Shown in pieces: positions 6,624 through 45,604 of a stretch of 64,000 bases of DNA (position 1 is its first letter; each line of letters starts with the position of its first letter). The notes below the pieces were generated by a model that saw only the letters and a list, made by a program, of their open reading frames with translations, did no database searches and was not told where the DNA came from. Origin of the DNA: Podarcis melisellensis (Eukaryota); NCBI GenBank assembly GCA_964234715.1, contig OZ174286.1; one strand, given 5' to 3'. The translations under genes and the position numbers were made by a program.

Positions 6624-7282
6624 TACTAAAAAGCTGGCGACCTCAGGCTGGGAAGAGGAAACACATTAGTAAATTCTTAGCTATGGGGTGTTGTAGAGGG
6701 GAAGAGTTAAAAGGGGACTTTTTATAGAAAGAGCCTAACAGGCTTGCATAGGAATGAGGCAATGCCTGGTCCTTTAATAAAAAAAGAGAGAAACTGATAA
6801 ATTGCTGAGTAACGGCTCATTTAGTCTCTCTCATACTGGAGTCCTTACTGGCTAGATACTTTATCATTGTATGCTTATTGCTTTGTTAGCAAGCAGACAA
6901 CACAAGAGTCCAACTGATACAAGTGATATATTTCAATAGACCAGGTTTGGTTGCTAGTGGTGTTGCTAAGTGGATTTTCAGCTGCACGGAGTATACTTCA
7001 AAGGAAGATGGCAGAAGAAGCTGGCATGGCTACAGTTGACTGCTTACTGGGATGGTATGGGGCAGGGCAGGGTGGCAGTGAGGCCAGCGCTGTGCAAGAG
7101 CACCAGCCGAAAGCACCAACCTCTCCTAGAAGATAGTATCCAAATGTGTTTCCCCAGTGTTTTCTGGAATCACACTGGACCAGAAACTTTATGGCTGACA
7201 AGTTGTAGTAAAATAAATTGAAGTACAATTTGAAGGCTACACCTGATTTTCTTTGTCAAAAGAGGTTGTGGGACTTAGGGTG

Positions 7283-7693
7283 TGTCAGGGAACTGCCATC
7301 GGAGAGTCAGGTGGTGGAAGGGCTCAAGGAGGCTAGGAGACCTTCGGATGCTGAGGAAGGAACCCCTAGGGGGAGAGAGAGAGTTCCTGCAGAAACTCAA
7401 TCGGAGGAAGGGCTCCAAGATGTTTCCAGTGAGAACAGCGGGGAGGGCTCAGGACCTCTGCTGGGGACGCCCACTCCACGGAGGAAACTGTCACGCAGAG
7501 AATCCAGAAGGAGAGTTTCCGTCAAGGAACTCTTATGTTGGCGTAAATTCCGGAAGCGCCCACTGACGGATTCTGCCAGCGATTGAGGTAGCCATGCACC
7601 CATGGCTCCGCGGACTGGGAAAGTTTAGGAACTGATGGTAAAGCTTGGAGGGCTTAAACGCTTACGCATGAGCAGCCCCCTTTTCCCATTACA
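7283..7693 (+). mobile_element. Solo LTR-like element containing an open 100-codon frame
   Basis: Starts TGTCAGGGAA, ends TTCCCATTACA; 5-bp TSD gggtg at 7278-7282 and 7694-7698; frame 7284-7586 is open; homologue at 45155-45590. Confidence 0.82.
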
Positions 7694-7991
7694 GGGTGTT
7701 TATGTATTTTTATTTTATTTTATTTATTAAATTTGTTTACCATCTCAGGGTGGTTCACAGCATAAAATCGGCTTTAAAATATTTTTTTATAGCAGCAGAG
7801 TGACATTGCAACAATGGCTTTTTGCTGTAGTGTTTATTCAGCTGTGGATTGGGAATCAGAAACCTGCAGCCCTCCACAAGCTGTTGGAGTACACCTTTCA
7901 CCATCCCAGACTATGCTGTCTGGGGCTGTTGGACGTCAAACAACATCTCTAGGGCCACATGATCCCCTTTCCTCTTGCAGACGGATAATAT

Positions 7992-8431
7992 TGTCAGGAG
8001 CTCATCCTACTCTCAGGTAGGACCCTGGCAGAGACACATGCCTGACTGGCATGTTCTCTTCCTCCTGGTCGTTCGTTCGTGAGCTTCAAAAGCTTTCTTC
8101 TGCCCGAACATCACAGTGACTGATGCCAACAGACATCGGCACACTTGGGGATCCACAGAGTCTTTGCAGCTTGCATAACAGACCTCAGCAACTCAGCATT
8201 TTGGCTAATCTACTTTATTTACATATAAACACACACGGAGCACTGCAACATGGCTCCCTCTCTCTCAGATAGCAAAGAGAAAAAGGACAAAGGACAATAG
8301 TCCCACTTCACGGAACACAGTAACACAAACATCCTGTCTCTGTCACTTCCCACTCTGTGGAGTCAAAACATACACCGTCATGTGATAGACAAAAATCCCA
8401 TGACTGCAATCATGGAGCAGGAGTTCTAACA
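7992..8431 (-). mobile_element. Solo LTR
   Basis: TGTCAGGAGCTC ... GAGTTCTAACA inverted termini; flanks aatat / tatat; AATAAA on the minus strand near 8214-8219. Confidence 0.7.
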
Positions 8432-45154: not shown

Positions 45155-45590
45155 TGTAATGGTTATATGGGGTTGCTCGTGTGTAAGTTGCTGCCACTCC
45201 TGGCTAGGTAGCCTGGTTAAACCTTTCCTGGCTGGACAGCCCTCCACTTCGTGGCTGTTCAGTCGCTAGCAGAATCCGTCAGTGGGCATTTCTTGAACTT
45301 CTTCCAGCAAAGAAGTTCTTTGACGCCAAGTCTACACGTACTTTCCCTGCGCGGAAGTCTTCTGTGCAGGGTGGGTGTGGGTAGCGGAGGACCTGTGCTC
45401 TCCCCGCTGGTCTCCAGAGAAGAGTCCTGGAGCCCTCTCTCCGATTCCCCCATCCGCCCCCCCTTTATCCCTGGTGTTACGCTGATTTCCTTCCCCAGCT
45501 GATGAGTCCCCTCTCTCCCTGCTTGGCCCTTCTCCGGCTTCGCTTGGGAGCCCTGCCTCCACTTCTGGCTCCGATGTCAGTTCCCTGACA
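45155..45590 (-). mobile_element. Solo LTR-like element, diverged homologue of 7283-7693
   Basis: Minus strand starts TGTCAGGGAACTG and ends CCATTACA; flanks cccct / ccccc; frameshifted reading frame ending VKELLCWKKFKKCPLTDSASD*. Confidence 0.8.
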
Positions 45591-45604
45591 CCCCCCCCCC
45601 CCGG

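Follow-up and report, generated by a model that had tools for sequence, protein, structure and literature searches.

Two solo LTRs of Podarcis melisellensis probably carry the fossil end of a chromovirus pol

Two elements in the window, by which we mean the whole 64,000-nucleotide stretch of Podarcis melisellensis contig OZ174286.1 (assembly GCA_964234715.1) that was analysed, are best explained as solo LTRs of a chromovirus in which the tail of the integrase is encoded by the LTR (probability about 0.8); of the identity and architecture of the family we are more confident still. The elements, A and B, would be the products of LTR-LTR recombination and would belong to two subfamilies of a lacertid Ty3/Gypsy chromovirus. 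The parent pol would comprise RT, RNase H, integrase, SH3 and chromodomain, with a protease in the longest model, followed by some 200 further residues. The polypurine tract would be translated as G-E-E-V-D (G-G-E-V-D in some copies), with the Asp codon completed by the first base of the LTR, and the last ~100 codons of pol would lie inside the 3' LTR. With the end of pol inside the 3' LTR, the frame would be present in every LTR copy. In a solo LTR it would be a fossil without a start codon, and its synonymous-rich divergence would be a record of selection on active master copies before insertion.

Element A starts with TGTCAGG, ends with CATTACA and is flanked on both sides by a perfect 5-bp target-site duplication, GGGTG, as expected of a solo LTR (TG..CA termini with a duplication of 4-6 bp). 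Its reading frame begins at the second base (7284) and runs for 100 stop-free codons to a TGA at 7584-7586. It contains no ATG and so is not a gene by itself in a solo LTR. Taken alone, the length of the frame is not significant: 30% of shuffles of the T-poor 411-nt element keep at least one of all six frames open for at least 100 codons. No canonical AATAAA was seen in the 107 nt 3' of the stop (7587-7693); if the tail is encoded in the mRNA, the poly(A) site must fall within these last 107 nt of the 3' LTR. An AT-rich simple repeat, (TTTTA)n-like, lies directly past the right duplication at 7696-7740. The features of element A are as follows.

7283..7693, plus strand: solo LTR A of the lacertid chromovirus family, 411 bp, TG..CA
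7278..7282, unstranded: left target-site duplication GGGTG of element A
7694..7698, unstranded: right target-site duplication GGGTG of element A
7284..7586, plus strand: putative fossil 3' end of pol, last 100 integrase-extension codons and TGA
7284..7409, plus strand: N-terminal 42 codons, acidic indel-rich linker, pN/pS about 0.85
7410..7583, plus strand: C-terminal 58 codons, constrained module
7479..7514, plus strand: arginine-rich cluster RRKLSRRESRRR, residues 66-77
7521..7547, plus strand: sole predicted helix VKELLCWRK, residues 80-88
7560..7583, plus strand: conserved C-terminal end PLTDSASD
7587..7693, plus strand: non-coding LTR remainder; similarity between subfamilies stops at the stop codon

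Element B, the diverged homologue, also has TG..CA termini and was scored as a solo LTR with the flanks CCCCT and CCCCC. A run of 13 C at 45591-45603 adjoins it and makes this target-site duplication ambiguous. The features of element B are as follows.

45155..45590, minus strand: solo LTR B, 436 bp, TG..CA, of a different subfamily from A and closer to the protein P0001 and its contig L001
45150..45154, unstranded: flank CCCCT of B, matching CCCCC at 45591-45595 in 4 of 5 positions
45259..45435, minus strand: tail copy of B, C-terminal 58 codons and stop
45450..45466, minus strand: G-run in which B is one base out of register relative to L001

BLASTN aligns A and B over two stretches only, the first 43 nt (81%) and 188 nt further on (nt 117-304, 70%), and leaves the 107 nt past the stop unaligned. 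Relative to L001, B has 21 additional in-frame bases at 45497-45517. Its N-terminal piece (VRELTSE...) and its C-terminal piece (GLQDSS...SASD) lie in different frames, offset by one base, and the frame of the C-terminal piece meets a stop at element codon 4. The peptide that the sequence-only reading had given for B as a single product is thus spliced from two frames, the offset falling in the G-run at ~45450-45466. Such a break is expected for a decaying copy. The window, which includes 134 N letters, contains no internal pol sequence of the A/B family and has no match in Rfam. A 227-codon open frame on the plus strand at 49683-50363 matches a reverse transcriptase (RVT_1, PF00078, E 8e-17) and is probably, from this match, a fragment of another retroelement.

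The LTR is repeated in public sequencing runs. The contigs of four such runs were aligned to positions 6900-8100 at 80% likeness, the simple repeat past the right duplication being skipped. In run X1 the single-copy flanks have a depth of 76. Contig depth summed over the LTR, which is not a copy number, reaches 3e4 to 7e5 in organisms A and D, and the LTR is also repeated in organism F. In these three organisms the summed depth is hundreds to thousands of times that of the single-copy flanks, and in the metagenome contig L002 the same terminus stands after a different flank, as in a multi-copy family. The highest summed family depth is found in the bin 7556-7596, where the frame ends. For contigs of other subfamilies the similarity breaks off precisely at the stop codon (loose ends at 7586/7587 in three runs). 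These contigs are also lost over the variable linker, where their loose ends fall near 7340 and 7464. The empty site of insertion A was bridged by no contig in the runs. A run guessed to be RNA contains pieces of the LTR, which is not proof of transcription. Another very highly repeated element begins ~270 bp downstream of LTR A (7966-8100 in the aligned stretch), with a summed contig depth of up to about 9e5 against 76 in the single-copy flanks.

The evidence that the frame is the end of pol comes from sequences outside the window. A length-limited protein word search with the 100-aa frame as query gave no match. When the tails of A and B were combined into a profile and 1.84 billion representative proteins were scored with it, two matches came out. 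In the first, P0001 (474 aa), profile positions 1-100 correspond to residues 373-474, the exact C-terminus (E 5.7e-22). P0001 contains the end of the integrase core, an SH3_Tf2-1 domain (PF24626, E 7e-20), a chromodomain (Chromo, PF00385, E 3e-11) and an acidic extension, after which P0001/L001 reads GEEVD and then VRELPSE...LLCWKRFKRRPLSDSASD and the stop, with all domains in one frame. At the nucleotide level, L001 has the purine tract ggggaggaggtgga immediately 5' of TGTCAGGGAACTG. The second match (E 6e-4) is P0002, a 148-aa frame from the metagenome contig L002 (680 bp), where an AT-rich flank unrelated to pol precedes TGTCAGAGAACTG. Recurrence of the terminus behind such a flank identifies it as the LTR end and, from the sequence, P0002/L002 is taken to be an LTR copy of a more distant subfamily.

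Proteins of Podarcis muralis show the same junction. P0003-P0006 are RT-RNase H-integrase-chromodomain fragments, of which P0003 passes from the extension into the LTR in frame; P0005 and P0006 reach the junction too, but with a frameshift at it. Two longer RT-RNase H-integrase-chromodomain Pols, P0010 (1,280 aa, with a protease among its precomputed domains) and P0008 (1,275 aa), end in the tail, reading ...GGPGGEVD and then VRELPSEGQEVEGL...PTPRRKLLRRESRRRVSVKDLLCWKRFRKRPLSDSTSD. The tail of copy A is 73% identical to that of P0010 and 61% to that of P0008, and the extension before the LTR is conserved between P0001 and the Podarcis proteins. Exact look-ups of P0003 and P0004 recovered no full-length genomic copy. 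A scan of metagenome contigs with 18-mers gave 22 matches, all chance ones of 18-23 nt in soil or water contigs, and a scan of viral contigs gave none. Neither the look-ups nor the scans yielded a two-LTR copy or a primer-binding site of the family.

The target-site duplication adjoins the TG, so the solo LTRs of the window fix the start of the LTR, and pol runs in frame into exactly that start. This supports what had been inferred from the letters of the window, that the frame is the C-terminal Pol/integrase tail of a Gypsy-like lizard element read through the polypurine tract: L001, P0001, P0010 and P0008 all have it in frame. The in-frame pol that was to be sought upstream is there, integrase and chromodomain being continuous with the tail in L001, P0008 and P0010. 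The coding LTR is read as the probable 3' LTR of an intact element by joining the solo LTRs of the window with the internal-to-LTR junctions of L001 and the Podarcis proteins. The polypurine junction itself is seen in L001 and implied by the Podarcis proteins, and the polyprotein frame crosses the tract and ends in the LTR as in group A of the plant CRM clade.

A related family has the same layout. In L025, a 5.1-kb gag-pol contig, the purine tract gaggggggatgg is followed by TGTTGTGG, 324 nt before the stop of pol (L025:4380-5122), and the end of the contig overlaps its own start by a few bases. An LTR of about 730 bp, collapsed in the contig and encoding about 108 codons, is suggested by this sequence, and the arrangement accordingly looks general for lizard-type chromoviruses.

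Pfam matches on P0004, P0003 and P0001 give the pol order of a chromovirus (RT, RNase H, integrase, SH3, then chromodomain). The canonical, Tf1/sushi-like chromoviruses found in vertebrates, fungi and algae have the same order and the same SH3_Tf2-1 and Chromo end of the integrase, and are 39-50% identical to P0004. Typical chromovirus Pols in the match list end about 14 aa past the chromodomain (14 aa after FHxxYPxKP), whereas the A/B family adds about 200 aa and the lizard families have post-chromodomain tails of 126-209 aa. On these sequences the predicted integrase of the A/B family continues ~200 aa past the chromodomain, and its last ~100 aa are encoded by the LTR.

Retroviruses carry coding sequence inside the 3' LTR in nef and sag, and the A/B family is like them in this respect. 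But nef and sag are accessory genes in their own right, each with its own start, whereas the A/B frame is the end of pol itself. A reading of the LTR frame as a separate accessory protein of the nef/sag type, made from its own start codon or from a spliced mRNA, could appeal to the existence of retroviral ORFs that overlap U3 and to the unconstrained N-terminal part of the frame, which is what a leader might look like. We consider it very improbable. The element contains no ATG, the tail is continuous without a stop with integrase and chromodomain in L001, P0008 and P0010, and the part of the extension that precedes the LTR is conserved as well when P0001 is compared with the Podarcis proteins.

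Selection on the frame is confined to its C-terminal part. Over the last 21 codons A and B have, as had been noticed, 18 identical residues, 8 synonymous and 3 non-synonymous codon differences and a common stop. Over the last 58 codons their differences fall 14, 13 and 27 at first, second and third positions (27/54 at the third), with dS about 1.1, dN 0.26 and dN/dS 0.24 (Fisher p 5e-5). Over the same codons, five of the six pairs among A, B, L001 and L002 have a dN/dS of 0.14-0.24 or a saturated dS (p down to 3e-9). The remaining pair, A-L002, has a dN/dS of 0.56, which is not significant. Expressed as pN/pS, the C-terminal ~57 codons give 0.2-0.33 (Fisher p 5e-5 to 1e-9). Protein identity in this part is 59-73% when A, B and close relatives are compared, and drops to 36% with L002, the distant copy; of the 12 variant sites listed within 7410-7583 from the public runs, 7 are at third positions. 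Both A and B are dead, so neutral decay accounts for part of what separates them, and the constraint in active lineages will have been stronger than these ratios suggest.

The first ~40-44 codons of the LTR have a pN/pS of about 0.85, which is not significant. Between B and L001, pS is 0.25 over the first ~44 LTR codons against 0.59 in the C-terminal part, and the first ~13-22 nt, which form the LTR terminus, are conserved as DNA. Any constraint on the N-terminal part is thus probably at the nucleotide level; at the protein level the first ~43 LTR codons appear from these ratios to be a near-neutral linker. The purifying selection claimed for a frame filling 75% of the element is borne out in its last ~57 codons, which make up some 42% of the LTR, but not in its first ~43.

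Conservation of this kind might also be attributed to signals that act in cis within the LTR, as DNA or as RNA, such as the integrase-binding end or a promoter or enhancer, with the open frame being incidental. This is consistent with the non-significant length of the frame and with the N-terminal part, where the terminal ~13-22 nt are kept at the DNA level, pS is the low value given above and pN/pS is near 1. It does not fit the C-terminal part, where the differences concentrate at third positions, the protein retains the identities given above although synonymous divergence is near saturation, and the position of the stop is kept, with similarity ending right there. We regard cis-acting signals as a highly unlikely account of the frame. 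That the other strand of the LTR codes for a protein is scarcely credible, and this reading was rejected. The antisense frame, with which the sense frame has its third positions in common, stays open over 76 codons in A and over 92 codons in B and has the same dN/dS (0.25), an expected artefact of those common positions. In L001 and L002, the copies from outside the window, it is interrupted by stops, so that the coding frame is the sense frame, to which alone the protein-database matches and the continuity with pol belong.

As the end of an integrase, the LTR-encoded part would consist of two pieces. The first would be the near-neutral acidic linker of about 43 aa. The second, of about 57 aa, would comprise RRxxxRRE[S/H]RRR, a helix VKxLLCW, a second basic cluster and the end PL[T/S]DS[A/T]SD. 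Across seven sequences the conserved features are the arginine cluster (RRESRRRV, RREHRRRL or QREGRQRI), LLCW, the second basic cluster and a PLxDSxSD end; six of the sequences extend over the LLCW core, and all of them retain it. In the tail of A, a loose pattern for a bipartite NLS is matched from residues 75-76 onward. It had been described as a candidate protein domain, a term that the AlphaFold2 model does not bear out: computed from a small alignment, it has a mean pLDDT of 60 and is disordered apart from a single 9-residue helix at residues 80-88, VKELLCWRK. The tail has no significant match in Pfam, among the sequences of solved structures or in the ESM Atlas, and its function is read from its composition and by analogy.

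The chromodomain of the family also departs from the standard form. When it is aligned to that of HP1 (1kna), Y24 is replaced by H, W45 is kept and Y48 is replaced by E, so that one of the three aromatic cage residues of a type I chromodomain is present. This cage resembles the state described for plant type II chromodomains. We tentatively propose, by analogy, that the disordered tail acts as a short-linear-motif module of the integrase that would serve in nuclear import, in tethering the pre-integration complex to a partner in chromatin, or in both, and that it may compensate for the chromodomain with a single cage residue.

Tails of related architecture were found in sister lizard families. 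P0017 of Podarcis muralis and P0020 and P0021 of Anolis carolinensis (clusters of 366 and 94 members, respectively) have post-chromodomain tails of 126-141 aa that end in RRSARL or RRSARI. This motif is present in three of 120 Pols, these three, and nowhere else in those proteins, against a chance expectation roughly estimated at about 0.05 occurrences. It matches RRSARLSA of HMGN and RRSARIAT of Dot5 in 7 of 8 positions. An RRSARL-type core is the motif by which HMGN, Dsup and Dot5 bind the nucleosome acidic patch, via arginine anchors (PMC12487698; PMC13347269). Our literature search for links between HMGN-like motifs and retrotransposon integrases found none. The sister families are like the A/B family in having long acidic post-chromodomain tails that end in an arginine motif, and they share the acidic xGF(L)PxSQ element with P0001. 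The A/B family differs from them in having RRE[S/H]RRR[V/L] followed by LLCW and an acidic end, with no canonical HMGN-like motif: the form RRS[A/S]R[L/I], with its three essential arginines, is absent. For the A/B family the chromatin-tethering step is consequently one that we only infer. By analogy, the A/B tail and the HMGN-like motif of the sister families suggest that squamate chromoviruses evolved tails that would engage nucleosomes directly.

The closest precedent for this architecture is the CR motif of the integrase in group A of the plant CRM clade. There the reading of pol across the polypurine tract into the LTR is documented for plant centromeric retrotransposons. In CRM elements the CR motif replaces the chromodomain, whereas the A/B family keeps the chromodomain and adds the tail about 100 aa after it. 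The hosts are plants in one case and reptiles in the other, and the likeness drawn is one of architecture. Our full-text search of the literature for LTR-encoded integrase tails in reptiles or other vertebrates returned plant papers only. A likeness in mechanism alone may be drawn to Ty1, for which two studies describe, in the disordered C-terminus of the integrase, a short basic module that serves both nuclear import and integration targeting (PMC7459421; bioRxiv 10.1101/2019.12.18.879569). Ty1 is a Copia-type yeast element whose module is not LTR-encoded and has no sequence relation to the tail of the A/B family.

The elements provide a clear vertebrate example of an LTR that doubles as coding sequence for its own integrase. 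The same ~300 nt would serve as integrase-binding end, in any promoter role that the LTR has and as protein code, which goes some way to account for the unusual conservation apparent in part of a lizard LTR. For annotators they are a warning, since there may be thousands of solo LTRs with a selection-like coding signature that are nevertheless not genes. The constrained tail is also a small candidate for what governs nuclear entry or the choice of chromatin by A/B-family elements. A bolder and more doubtful version of the proposed function, again by analogy, is that the 57-aa tail is an integration-targeting module of vertebrate chromoviruses, a disordered motif of arginine anchor and helix that would tether the integrase to nucleosomes or another chromatin partner. 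Such a module would take over from the degenerate methyl-lysine cage, in parallel with the HMGN-type motif that the sister families have at the same place. If this speculation is true, squamate chromoviruses as a group would keep a targeting determinant inside the LTR.
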